Shown here piece after piece: positions 59,251 to 64,000 of a DNA stretch of 64,000 nt. The translations under genes were made by a program, and so were the position numbers. The notes under the pieces were generated by a model, which had not been told where the DNA came from, searched no databases, and worked only from the letters and a program-made list of their open reading frames with translations. The first letter of the stretch is position 1; each line of letters starts with the position of its first letter. The DNA lies in assembly GCA_009103225.1 (NCBI GenBank), contig RHPI01002888.1:1-64000 (forward strand). The letters run 5' to 3'. Origin of the DNA: Chlorokybus atmophyticus (Eukaryota; Plantae; Mesostigma and Chlorokybus algae).

Positions 59251-62215
59251 TTATATTGGCACATGCTGCAAGGCGCATGTAATATATAGTAAAGGCCACA
59301 CAAGCTTGTGTTGCCTTTGCTATATACAATAGAGGCAACACAAATGACTATCTTTACTTTATACAAGACATGCTCATGCAAGATATGCGTTAGCATGCTC
59401 GTGCATGCTGACTTACCAAGACTAGTAGTCGGCAGCATGGAAATCAGTCGCACACCCAGATATACCTTAAAAATGCAGCAACACAACATTCAAATAGCTT
59501 ACAATCTATAATGCTACCATAAACGATGTTTACTAGGAGTAGTACTCTTTAAGTACTCATAATTGACAAATTACATGTGTTGAAACATTAACAATTCTAG
59601 CAACGTTCTCACCGTGCACAAAATGCTTGTGCAGGGTCGCATAAAAGTTCTCTCACACGTACGCTTATGCCTATAAACTATACAAGATACCTTGTGTGAT
59701 GTTTGCAAGGTGTTATGGTACGATGGTTGGCTCACGCCAATGCTACAATTTCATTAATCATACTGTATTATGTATGTGTCAATCGATGTGCACCTTGCTT
59801 TTACATGTAAATATGTATCTCACCTCAAGTTATACAAACGCATGCAACACGTCTTTGCTTGTCGGTATACATTGAACTAATGTATATGTGCTCTTAACAT
59901 TTTACTTTCATTCTTGATGGAATCATTCAGCCACGTCACCGCATTACAATCATTCAACAGCAATCAAAGGCCTTTGGGCCACGAGCACTTGAGTTGAGGG
60001 ACTTCACGATCGCCACATTTTGCATTAATAGGGCTCGTCACCAGTGCGGAGGACTGGTAGCCACGAGCTTCAGGTAAGCGTTTGGTAATAGTGTTTTCAA
60101 TATGTGTACACATACAAGTTTTTAAGGTCTGTAATAACGTCAATGACGTGCGTGATACATACGCACGACAAGCTACCTGTATTATGTTTTACTATTCATC
60201 TTAAAATTGAGGTCGTTACCACCGGAAGCATTGTACAAATTGTGATGTTTGCAACATACATATCAAAATCTAATTGTAACACAAAAAAATATACATCTTG
60301 TAGTTGAATATAGATTGATAATCGGAGTTGTTTGACTTGAAGCTTTGTAAACATTTAGCCAATGTCAATCAATTTAACTACACATGCTGTGTAGTATTCC
60401 TTTATGTTCGCGTCTTTTAAAGCAAAATACCCAACTTAAAAAGCAACATATGGAAATCAATGTTGAGCTTTATTGATTTATAGCGTAGTACCCCCACAAT
60501 GTTTGGGTCATACAAGATTGCAGCGAAATGAGCAATCACAAAATAACACATTTAATGTGAAGCATGTCTTGTATAAATGTATATCAGTATGTATCTTGGA
60601 TACCTGAACAGTGATATGTGTTTGATTCATTCCCACATGTCATATTTATTTGCGCACACTTTATTAACAATGTGAAGATGTTTAATTGATAACACCATAA
60701 CACAGCACAGCCGCAGGTTGCATGTATATGAGCACTTTACGTCATATACATACCCATCAGCTTAGCACATACTTTTTCCGAAATGCACACACCTCAAGCA
60801 TCCATGCCGTTTACATTTATTTATCGTAGCATGTTTCGATTGCAATGATGCATTTTGGGCAACATGCTAGTTGTCTGAAACAATTATAGCGTACCAAATA
60901 CAATTAAATTACTGGTAAGCCCGCTGTCAACAACGAATGCATTCAAACCATAAGAATTGCTATCGTGTTAAGATCAAATAGCTTTAACCATTGTTACATT
61001 ACACACTTCGCTATATTACTCCAACTTACAATAGAAGCGTGGTACAATGTACGCGTTTCAGCATAACATTGTTCATGATAATACATGCGTTGTGAACATG
61101 TTTGTAAATAAAACATTAAGCTTTAAATGAAATATTAAGCTTTATTTATTAAAAAAGATAGATCGGCAAAGCATTTTATCATTATGTTATTGGCAATTTA
61201 AATAAAGACCTTTTTTCACATATTAATATTCACGTATGTTCCGCTTTGGTAAGTTGTTATGAAACGACATTGTAGTCAGAGTAATTTTGTGAGTTATCAG
61301 GAGATTTTTTAGAGTTGGCTCAGCCAACTTGACTGTGGCGTAACTTACAACTTTACGTCTGATATGCTAACAACAAGCACTCATAGCACAAGATGACTGT
61401 TTCACTGACTGTTTGACTGAGTTGCGCTGCTGGTACGTACCGTACGCTGTCATCACACTTCTGCTGATGCACGTGATCGGTTATAATTACCTTTCCTTCC
61501 TCAATACAAACAACTGAACTGGGGCCAGGCAGAAGCTGCCGCAAAACCAATCCCAAATCAGGCACGGGCCTGCGCTTGGAAGGGAACTGATTGTCCCGGA
61601 CATTTCTGGCTTCACCCGTAGAGGCGGCGGCGGAGGAGGAGGACAAGGGCTCGGGGGAGGAGGGGGACGGAGAGGAGGAGGGGAAGTACGAGGGCGTGTG
61701 GACTATGTGGAGGGTGTGGAGGTTCAGGTTGGCCGAGGCGATGAGCACCGCCGCAAGGGTTTAGCTCTCACACGCAGGTGTGGCTAGGGCAGGGGCGGCG
61801 ATTAGGGTTGTTGGGGCGGAGGTGGCATTGGCATGACGTAGGAGTAGTAGAGTTGTATGTAGGTCATGTAGAGATTACCATCGTCTTCGTTTGTTGTGCG
61901 CAAGCGCCCTTCGCTGCACCCGGGAAGGCTGGATAGACGGTTATCCCTGTCACCTATCAGCCAGTAAGTACTGAGACGGCTTGATGCGATGGGACAGCTG
62001 CTTCAATTCAGTGCGCTATACATAGGGTTGACTTGACTGGGTCCAAGCTGCTAGTTTGTAAGCAATGTGCAAGAATACGTGGTTTTTTCCTAGGTCAAGT
62101 CAGTCTTGCCACTCCTGCGGGATACGAATGGTGCGGAGCGCTGGACCGATTGAGTGAGTCTTGCTGTTCTGACAGAGCAGAAAGACCCGACAGTTGCCTC
62201 CTGGCATGCGCAGCC

Positions 62216-64000
62216 ATGGGCCAGTGCGCGTCAAAGGGCAACAACCCTAAGAAGCATGTTGGTGCTGTCGTCCACACGTCTTCCGGTACGTGAACGACTT
62301 CCCTTTGGCCCATGTTCATACCACTTAGAATTGCAGTATTGCGGGATGTACTGCAGTCCAGCGTACACTGTACTGCACTGAACTGAGCTTCATCAGACTG
62401 CATAGCATGACACAATTCGCAACGCATTTATCGTACTACATACGATTTAGCGGACAGCACAGCACTGCACTGCACCACAGCACATCATACTCCTGCACTT
62501 CACCGCACGGCACTTCAACATACCAAAGTACACAGCGCAGCCAAGCACTCAAGAATGCAGTACACTACGCTGCACACCGCAGCACCCATCATCACATTCA
62601 GCTGCAAAGTATAATACACCACACACTGCACCACACCACAGTGCACCGTGCTGTATGTATGCACGCACGCAAGCACCCAGGCGCTCCCCACACATGTGTG
62701 CAGAAGAGGAAGACGTTGTCGCTCTTGCACCGCACGTGAGTGAAGCGAAGCAGGCGGTGGCGGTAGCTGACGTGAGGCTGGCAGTTAACGGTGAGGCCAA
62801 TGGAGAGGCCCACCACAAGCCTGGCCATGAAGAAGATGATGCCCCCCCCTCCACGTCCTACACAACCGCTGAGGATGAAACAGCATCAACTACCGCAGCT
62901 GTTCACCACGCGAGGGAAGTACCCGCGGATGCTACAGCCACGCCCACTTCGCCAGACACTTTGACAGCTGAAGCGCCAGCCGCAGCGGCAGTGGTCTCAA
63001 AATGCCCGTTCCTTCACGGATCCGTTGGCTGCTTTCCTTACCCAGGTACACTATCACCCTCTCACTGAGTCACTCACATCACTGTAGTAAGCCTAGTGAC
63101 ACAGTTACTAGGCGTATTACCCTGCACACATGTTGTTTTATGTGATTTGCAAGCTGCATCTTATACGGGCTTTTCGCCTGCCTTTGTTTACAAGTGCACT
63201 TGATAACTTCAAACGCACGCTTGTTGCCTGTCACCATCCATGTCTTCCTATGCGTATTGTGATGCATACTCATGTTGGCTTGTTCTGCTGCAAAATAAAG
63301 GCAAGGCAAGGTTTATACCCTCGACTACGTGCCCCAAGCACTTAATAGTTGAGGGTACGAAACCTGTCTTCCTATGTACAAGAGGAAGGTCGTATCTTCA
63401 CCTAATAAGTGGTTGGGGCATTTAGTCCCACTAGGTGCCCCAAGCATTTAGTGGTTAAGGGTACATATAAATTCCTGCCACTACTTACAAAACCTGAATT
63501 AAGCACAGAATAGCTTTTTTTATTGAAGTTAAATTGTGTTAAGCTTTGCAAGAAGGATAAGGATGCCGCACTCAGGCGGTTGTTACAGCACTCTCTCAGT
63601 CTGCGATGATGGATGCGAGTGAGTGGATGTGCTTCGGCAGCTTCAAACCACTTGTTGCTACACAGGGTATGTGCATGGACGTCATCCGGAGGTATGCGCA
63701 AACGGTTGTCGACCCGACCCCAAGTTGGGTCAAACAGAGACGAAGGTGCAGACTCTGTTGAGGGAAGCACGCGAGTTTCAGGTATGAACACCCATGTGTT
63801 TGTGTTGCCTGTACCTGGCATCTGTTGGATAGGTAGTATGAGAAAACTTGCAATGACGCCATACCCAACTCAGGTGCTATTTCATCGTGAGATGAGGTCT
63901 ACTCCTGAGGACGAGGCAAAACGGTGGACGGAGATTGAACAGGTTTGTTAACGGCAGCTTCTGGTTTATCATCTTTCTCGAGCGAGCACTTGACAATGTC
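62216..64000 (+). CDS. NOS: Nitric oxide synthase (algal animal-like NOS), 5' portion
   Basis: Exons 62216-62285, 62704-63045, 63666-63781 and 63874-63942 give MGQCASK...KCPFLHGSVGCFPYPGYVHGRHPEVCANGCRP...QTLLREAREFQVLFHREMRSTPEDEAKRWTEIEQ. This contains the algal-type CX3C zinc-site motif and the first helices of the NOS oxygenase domain. The heme Cys and the reductase domain lie beyond the window. Confidence 0.8.

Follow-up and report, generated by a model that had tools for sequence, protein, structure and literature searches.

The window analysed here comprises 64,000 nucleotides (nt) of Chlorokybus atmophyticus (contig RHPI01002888.1, positions 1 to 64,000), and its right-hand end holds, with a probability of roughly 0.92, the 5′ end of the expressed Chlorokybus gene Chrsp180S02868, encoding a single-chain nitric oxide (NO) synthase-ankyrin-globin protein. 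A sequence-only reading of positions 62216-64000 had proposed an "animal-like" NO synthase (NOS) in a streptophyte genome on the basis of a few exon peptides. The streptophyte source is given by the organism, Chlorokybus, in the Joint Genome Institute (JGI) dataset Chlat1, where the gene is annotated as a protein of 1504 residues (EukProt EP00898, JGI Chlat1 Chrsp180S02868; referred to as P0001 in the following). The peptides quoted in that reading are indeed encoded by four GT-AG-bounded exons on the plus strand, each of which is contained letter for letter in P0001, and the exon translations are identical to residues 40-62, 64-176, 178-215 and 216-238. Searching a representative library of 1.84 billion proteins with the 113-residue peptide of the second coding exon returned one match only, which was P0001 with 100% identity over residues 64-176 (E 1e-62).

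The identification as NOS is carried by the full protein. A Pfam search of P0001 detected NO_synthase (PF02898) at residues 205-550 (E 3e-115, 385 bits, cutoff 22.7) and a complete reductase for flavin mononucleotide (FMN), flavin adenine dinucleotide (FAD) and reduced nicotinamide adenine dinucleotide phosphate (NADPH), which is composed of Flavodoxin_1 (601-728, E 1.2e-20), FAD_binding_1 (810-1010, E 3e-20) and NAD_binding_1 (1031-1124, E 1.1e-6). The start of PF02898 at residue 205 falls within the exon 63666-63781. The sequence-only reading had named downstream exons devoid of the NO_synthase domain as the result that would speak against it; with PF02898 in P0001, the opposite was found. 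The haem motif it had suggested looking for is present as AWRNAPKC at residue 260. This haem-thiolate motif and the substrate-binding GWYADTEI (residue 428), both encoded outside the window, occupy columns which are invariant or nearly so in two alignments, and the reductase motifs RRYS (FAD) and GTGFAPF (NADPH) are present as well. P0001 has a short basic linker, VMKMLSRLRSHSTHVK, leading from its oxygenase domain to the FMN domain; the calmodulin-binding linker is described as poorly conserved in algal NOS (PMC8728061). C-terminal to the reductase follow ankyrin repeats (Ank_2, Ank_4 and Ank, residues 1170-1243, E 5.9e-13 for Ank_2) and an M-family globin (Globin, 1387-1495, E 8.7e-14), all in one polypeptide, which is the organisation defining the algal NOS-ankyrin-globin type.

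Transcription and splicing were assessed by aligning Logan contigs of four public runs to positions 61500-64000. A contig of 5263 nt from run X1 agrees with the window at 0 mismatches, joins the segments 61679-61963, 62094-62285, 62704-63045, 63666-63781 and 63874-63942, and extends 4258 nt past the window, so that its length is sufficient for the entire NOS-ankyrin-globin reading frame. Contigs of the runs X4 and X5 bear the same organism code, yet are only about 93-95% alike. The three joints of the coding region are present in X1, X4 and X5 contigs, and X5 contributes the leader joint also, as a loose end: a contig starting at 62094 carries terminal letters which resemble the last ones before 61963. 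Inspection of the splice dinucleotides revealed GT and AG at every intron, and as the contigs skip these introns they are taken to be spliced transcripts.

Read from the 5′ side, all on the plus strand, the first exon seen in RNA (61679-61963) is untranslated; its left end is the contig end only, and transcription may start further upstream. It is separated by a leader intron of 130 nt (61964-62093, GTAAGT..TCCTAG) from a second exon, the first part of which (62094-62215) is untranslated in our reading and translated for the most part, from 62104, in the JGI model. The start codon and the first 23 codons, beginning MGQCASKGNNPKK, lie at 62216-62285 (translation of 62216-62284: MGQCASKGNNPKKHVGAVVHTSS). 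An intron of 418 nt (62286-62703) precedes the exon 62704-63045, where 62706-63044 encodes the 113 residues of an acidic linker and a conserved motif, ending in VSKCPFLHGSVGCFPYP. After an intron of 620 nt (63046-63665) comes the exon with the CX3C site (63666-63781; 63668-63781 reads YVHGRHPEVCANGCRPDPKLGQTETKVQTLLREAREFQ), and behind an intron of 92 nt (63782-63873) the fourth coding exon (63874-63942), VLFHREMRSTPEDEAKRWTEIEQ, completes the first helix of the NOS oxygenase domain and opens the second. At 63943 all RNA contigs depart from the window, which runs on into the next intron (63943-64000, GTTTGT...), and the contig letters beyond this point read EIETTGTYRH, corresponding to residues 239-248 of P0001. 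The coding exons are conserved in a characteristic manner: of the 21 substitutions listed for X4/X5 against the window, 20 affect codon position 3 (binomial P 4e-9; 6 further differences are not part of this count). The frame is therefore under purifying selection, even where the second coding exon is of low complexity.

Several observations weigh against the assignment and have to be considered here. The catalytic part is encoded beyond the window and is known from the annotated protein, not from the DNA; of the oxygenase domain, the window itself contains no more than approximately the initial 34 residues (P0001 205-238), preceded by the leader. The runs used as transcript evidence were classified as RNA by guess only. 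Furthermore, P0001 lacks four segments, all short and conserved, in comparison to its relatives, namely 16-17 residues of the oxygenase sheet with the "...ITVFP..." strand after residue 304, about 10 residues of the FAD domain after 945-947, 11 residues before the NADPH GTG motif after 1026, and about 16 residues including the LVFGCR strand after 1059. Exactly at the first of these gaps the AlphaFold model of residues 148-601 (35 aligned homologues) is of low confidence, with a predicted local distance difference test (pLDDT) score below 50 at model residues 156-161. Real gaps of this kind could impair the enzyme. Chrsp180S02868 might then represent a decaying or non-catalytic paralogue which is expressed and conserved at its N-terminus, has lost core strands of the oxygenase and NADPH domains, no longer produces NO and perhaps serves purely as a scaffold (haem, ankyrin or globin). 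Apart from the low-confidence region of the model, this agrees with the weak NAD_binding_1 match (1e-6) and with the retention of both the "...ITVFP..." and the LVFGCR strand in the second Chlorokybus protein, Chrsp63S00556 (P0002), and in mammalian iNOS. We give this explanation a small chance, as the haem cysteine and the substrate glutamate are in place together with the motifs RRYS (FAD) and GTG (NADPH), the window part is under the strong purifying selection described above and a long, well-covered transcript contig exists. Pieces are, moreover, missing from P0002 at 5 sites, from P0005 over large stretches and from P0006 in the first half of the oxygenase domain. Since other conserved pieces are thus missing, at other places, from the paralogue, Mesostigma and Klebsormidium (KnNOS2) models, the four gaps of P0001 more likely reflect small exons that were skipped in the automated annotation of a gene family with many exons.

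The N-terminal part encoded in the window bears the marks of a non-animal NOS. Exon 62704-63045 specifies first an acidic linker of about 97 residues (18 acidic, 4 basic), rich in Ala, Thr, Glu and Val, and then KCPFLHGSVGCFPYPG, a motif which is conserved in non-animal NOS and recognisable as CPxxHG[ST] in 27 of the 31 non-animal matches. The following exon, 63666-63781, encodes (G)YVHGRHPEV, the putative zinc site C-ANG-C and the start of the first oxygenase helix (TLLREAREFQ). CX3C in place of the CX4C of animals, as had been noticed from the letters, is thus found as C187-ANG-C191 of P0001; it is usual for eukaryotic NOS outside the animals, 30 of 31 non-animal NOS matches having it behind PG[YF]xHG. 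The same spacing has been described for the Ostreococcus enzyme (PMC3701330), and the replacement of CX4C by CX3C was reported together with the absence of the N-terminal hook residues (PMC8728061). The CX4C zinc tetrathiolate motif of the animal type is not present in Chrsp180S02868 and hook residues are not evident; CX4C and hook are a feature of animal NOS and not of the NOS family overall.

No single exon was assigned to a family by itself: Pfam and PDB sequence searches with exons 1, 3 and 4 individually gave no match, and two faint matches of exon 2, Mucin (E 0.055) and Preseq_ALAS (E 0.068), are below the threshold and were not used. The latter covers ...SKCPFL and recalls the Cys-Pro haem-regulatory motif of ALAS, which was set aside, CPxxHG being a conserved element of non-animal NOS. 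An equivalence of CPFLHG to the animal N-terminal hook was also considered, for MAFFT paired it with "CP-RH" of a bat iNOS. The correspondence is at most tentative, because the structural alignments start only after the hook, at approximately nNOS 314-320 and eNOS 84-90, which is about the position of the CPFLHG element. A further conceivable arrangement is an intramolecular zinc site made up of the Cys and His residues of CPFLH together with CX3C. The AlphaFold model has a mean pLDDT of 86 and superimposes on the haem domains of eNOS, iNOS and nNOS with Z 40-41 and a root-mean-square deviation (rmsd) of 1.8-2.4 Å over 354-370 residues. Its window-encoded part consists of a coil with CPFLHG and CX3C (pLDDT 65-78) and of the first helix and half of the second (pLDDT >90); model helix 56-74, likewise above 90, corresponds to P0001 203-221.

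Concerning the linker (62706-62996), it looks disordered. Among the listed substitutions between Chlorokybus strains in exon 62704-63045, 15 of 16 are at codon position 3, and this bias indicates that the sequence is constrained beyond the expectation for a mere spacer. X4 and X5 share a 3-nt insertion after 62785 which keeps the frame.

A word search with P0001 retrieved Chrsp63S00556, Mesostigma Mv07497-RA.2, KFL_006460015 (KnNOS2), KnNOS1 and proteins of Apatococcus and Micractinium, in addition to many NOS of diatoms, dinoflagellates and animals. In a tree of 30 rows, with support given by the Shimodaira-Hasegawa-like approximate likelihood ratio test (SH-aLRT), each Chlorokybus protein is the sister of the other (SH-aLRT 100), both lying within a clade together with Klebsormidium, Apatococcus and Mesostigma (SH-aLRT 96-99), and animal NOS are set apart from the whole of the non-animal NOS (SH-aLRT 100). 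The term "animal-like" holds for architecture and fold and fails for descent, as the algal clade is separate from animal NOS. Taken literally, it would mean that the gene was acquired from an animal or stems from a contaminant, and the shared oxygenase-reductase architecture and an identity of 29-31% to animal NOS are compatible with that. Such an origin is nevertheless hardly credible in view of the short GT-AG introns of algal style within a Chlorokybus scaffold, the nearest relatives in Chlorokybus, Klebsormidium, Apatococcus and Mesostigma, the animal sequences forming their own clade, and the CPxxHG...CX3C signature of non-animal type. Independently of this question, P0003, a NOS-ankyrin protein of the trebouxiophyte chlorophyte Apatococcus lobatus, is nested in the otherwise streptophyte clade (SH-aLRT 99), which could be due to transfer or to uneven loss.

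The closest known protein is the described CaNOS Chrsp63S00556 (PMC8728061) from the same genome, which shares the NOS-reductase-ankyrin-globin organisation, 59% identity and the N-terminal element KCPFLHGSV...PYPGYVHGRHPEVC-x3-C. It is, in contrast, a separate gene on another scaffold, and its leader before KCPF measures about 46 residues versus about 123 in Chrsp180S02868. As both paralogues carry ankyrin repeats and globin, Chrsp180S02868 arose by duplication in the Chlorokybus lineage after the NOS-ankyrin-globin fusion. KnNOS2 and the Mesostigma protein MvNOS (Mv07497-RA.2) likewise combine NOS, ankyrin and a C-terminal globin and fall into the same mostly streptophyte clade, with the chlorophyte Apatococcus nested inside; they differ in their identity to Chrsp180S02868 of only 38-42%, and in the KnNOS2 model the oxygenase domain is missing its N-terminal half. 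The Ostreococcus tauri enzyme OtNOS and other algal NOS are comparable as two-domain NOS of photosynthetic eukaryotes with CX3C for CX4C (PMC3701330), whereas the ankyrin-globin extension is absent from OtNOS, which was not among the matches listed.

The transcript data also bear on the start of the protein. As annotated, P0001 begins with MTLATPAGYEW..., 39 residues upstream of MGQCAS. The JGI model reaches this start by a first exon of 5 nt (ATGAC, 61833-61837, donor GT) and an intron at 61838-62103 with the acceptor AG at 62102-62103. The resulting joint 61837/62104 occurs in no contig of the four runs aligned to 61500-64000. In the RNA splice form 61963/62094 the main frame is interrupted by a stop codon at 61834-61836, and its first in-frame ATG is the one at 62216. 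Six X4/X5 substitutions in 62094-62215, the part with the annotated extension, fall on codon positions 1, 2, 3, 2, 3 and 3 and show no coding pattern. The only listed change in the exon part 62216-62285 is synonymous (at 62233); the ATG at 62216 is embedded in gcagccATGG. Since the RNA joint leaves no earlier in-frame ATG and the extension is without a coding substitution pattern, the annotated start is probably wrong and the true start is MGQCASKG at 62216. Were the annotation right, with ATG 61833, the 5-nt exon and the 39-residue extension, the glycine would be internal and no acylation signal would exist. The public model reads so, and the letters it needs, ATGAC|GT at 61833-61839 and AG at 62102-62103, are present in the DNA. 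We consider it very unlikely, given that the competing joint 61963/62094 is backed by X1 (as a joint) and X5 (as a loose end), that the changes in the extension are distributed so differently from the 20 of 21 at position 3 downstream of 62216, and that an initial exon of 5 nt would be typical of a predictor artefact.

The spliced leader of 407 nt contains seven upstream ATGs (61705, 61741, 61833, 61857, 61866, 62128 and 62206). Six of these are closed by stops within their own exon; the frame of the seventh, at 62206, differs from the main frame and overlaps the main ATG. The upstream open reading frame at 61705 comprises 20 codons, and ATG 61833 opens a frame of 3 codons in the 61963/62094 splice form. 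This arrangement hints at translational control of the NOS.

With the start at 62216, the protein would begin with a candidate acylation signal. MGQCASK fits a myristoylation pattern of the PROSITE type, G-{EDRKHPFYW}-x(2)-[STAGCN]-{P}; in MGQCASKG, Gly2 is a candidate for N-myristoylation and Cys4 for palmitoylation, and basic residues (lysines) follow. N-terminal myristoylation and palmitoylation are thus predicted from the start motif, and a literature search for acylation of algal NOS gave no paper. The idea that algal NOS are generally myristoylated was considered and rejected: 6 of 31 matches start with MG and only 3 pass the pattern. The annotated start of the paralogue Chrsp63S00556, MGPHIM, fails it, unlike MGQCASK, and that of MvNOS, MGLTCF, is off the canonical pattern.

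Acylation of mammalian eNOS is established. This enzyme is similar to Chrsp180S02868 in its single-chain oxygenase-reductase organisation, in the fold of the haem domain (Z ~41, rmsd ~2 Å, 41% identity) and in the logic of an N-terminal Gly2 with a nearby cysteine (start MGNLKS in eNOS; predicted acylation in Chrsp180S02868). It differs by CX4C and hook versus CX3C without evident hook residues and by the lack of ankyrin repeats and globin. Given the separate clade of eNOS, the acylation signal would have arisen convergently. Another partial counterpart is SyNOS of Synechococcus PCC 7335, in which globin and NOS are also combined in one chain; this bacterial protein carries its globin at the N-terminus, and its fusion is of independent origin. 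According to the summary in PMC8728061, the SyNOS globin reportedly converts NO to nitrate.

From its domains, the enzyme would pass electrons from NADPH via FAD and FMN to the haem-thiolate, where L-arginine would be oxidised to NO and citrulline. By analogy to the CX4C zinc site of animals, the cysteines of CX3C may help to hold the dimer and the pterin site. The C-terminal globin may oxidise (dioxygenate) part of the NO to nitrate, as suggested by SyNOS, and the ankyrin repeats presumably bind partner proteins. At the MGQCASKG start, Gly2 is predicted to be myristoylated and Cys4 to be palmitoylated, and the acylated N-terminus together with the linker, which is acidic, about 100 residues long and probably disordered, would tether the enzyme to a membrane. 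A more far-reaching idea, which we put forward only tentatively and regard as rather doubtful, is that Chrsp180S02868 with its corrected start is a dually acylated, membrane-tethered NOS-ankyrin-globin, that eNOS-like targeting evolved independently in one of the streptophytes that branched off earliest, and that the two paralogues are divided by location, with Chrsp180S02868 at a membrane on its long acidic linker and Chrsp63S00556 soluble.

Both the NOS-ankyrin-globin organisation in Chlorokybus and the presence of "animal-like" NOS in a streptophyte alga were known before. Chatelain et al. 2021 (PMC8728061) described this organisation for Klebsormidium (KnNOS2), Chlorokybus (chrsp63S00556) and Mesostigma, and the same study reports land plant genomes to be without NOS. 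The identifier Chrsp180S02868 was found in no searchable paper, and the gene is a modestly new finding as a second, undescribed paralogue of a published gene kind. Chlorokybus therewith keeps two expressed-looking NOS-ankyrin-globin genes. This adds weight to the published notion that early streptophytes already had NOS with this fusion and that it was lost before land plants. The practical gain consists in a better gene model: the public protein is probably 39 residues too long at its start, hiding the putative myristoylation/palmitoylation signal, and probably skips several short exons. The database entry P0001 would consequently mislead anyone who expresses the enzyme or infers its location from it.

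Two further features of the gene region are mentioned for completeness. The intron 63046-63665 contains a direct repeat of 35 nt (63324-63358 and 63430-63464; 86% identical, 106 nt apart), of which no further copies exist in the window. Just upstream of the first RNA-supported exon, and extending into it, lies a low-complexity tract rich in GGA/GAG (61621-61698), with which a very deep, unrelated X1 contig has 34 nt in common.

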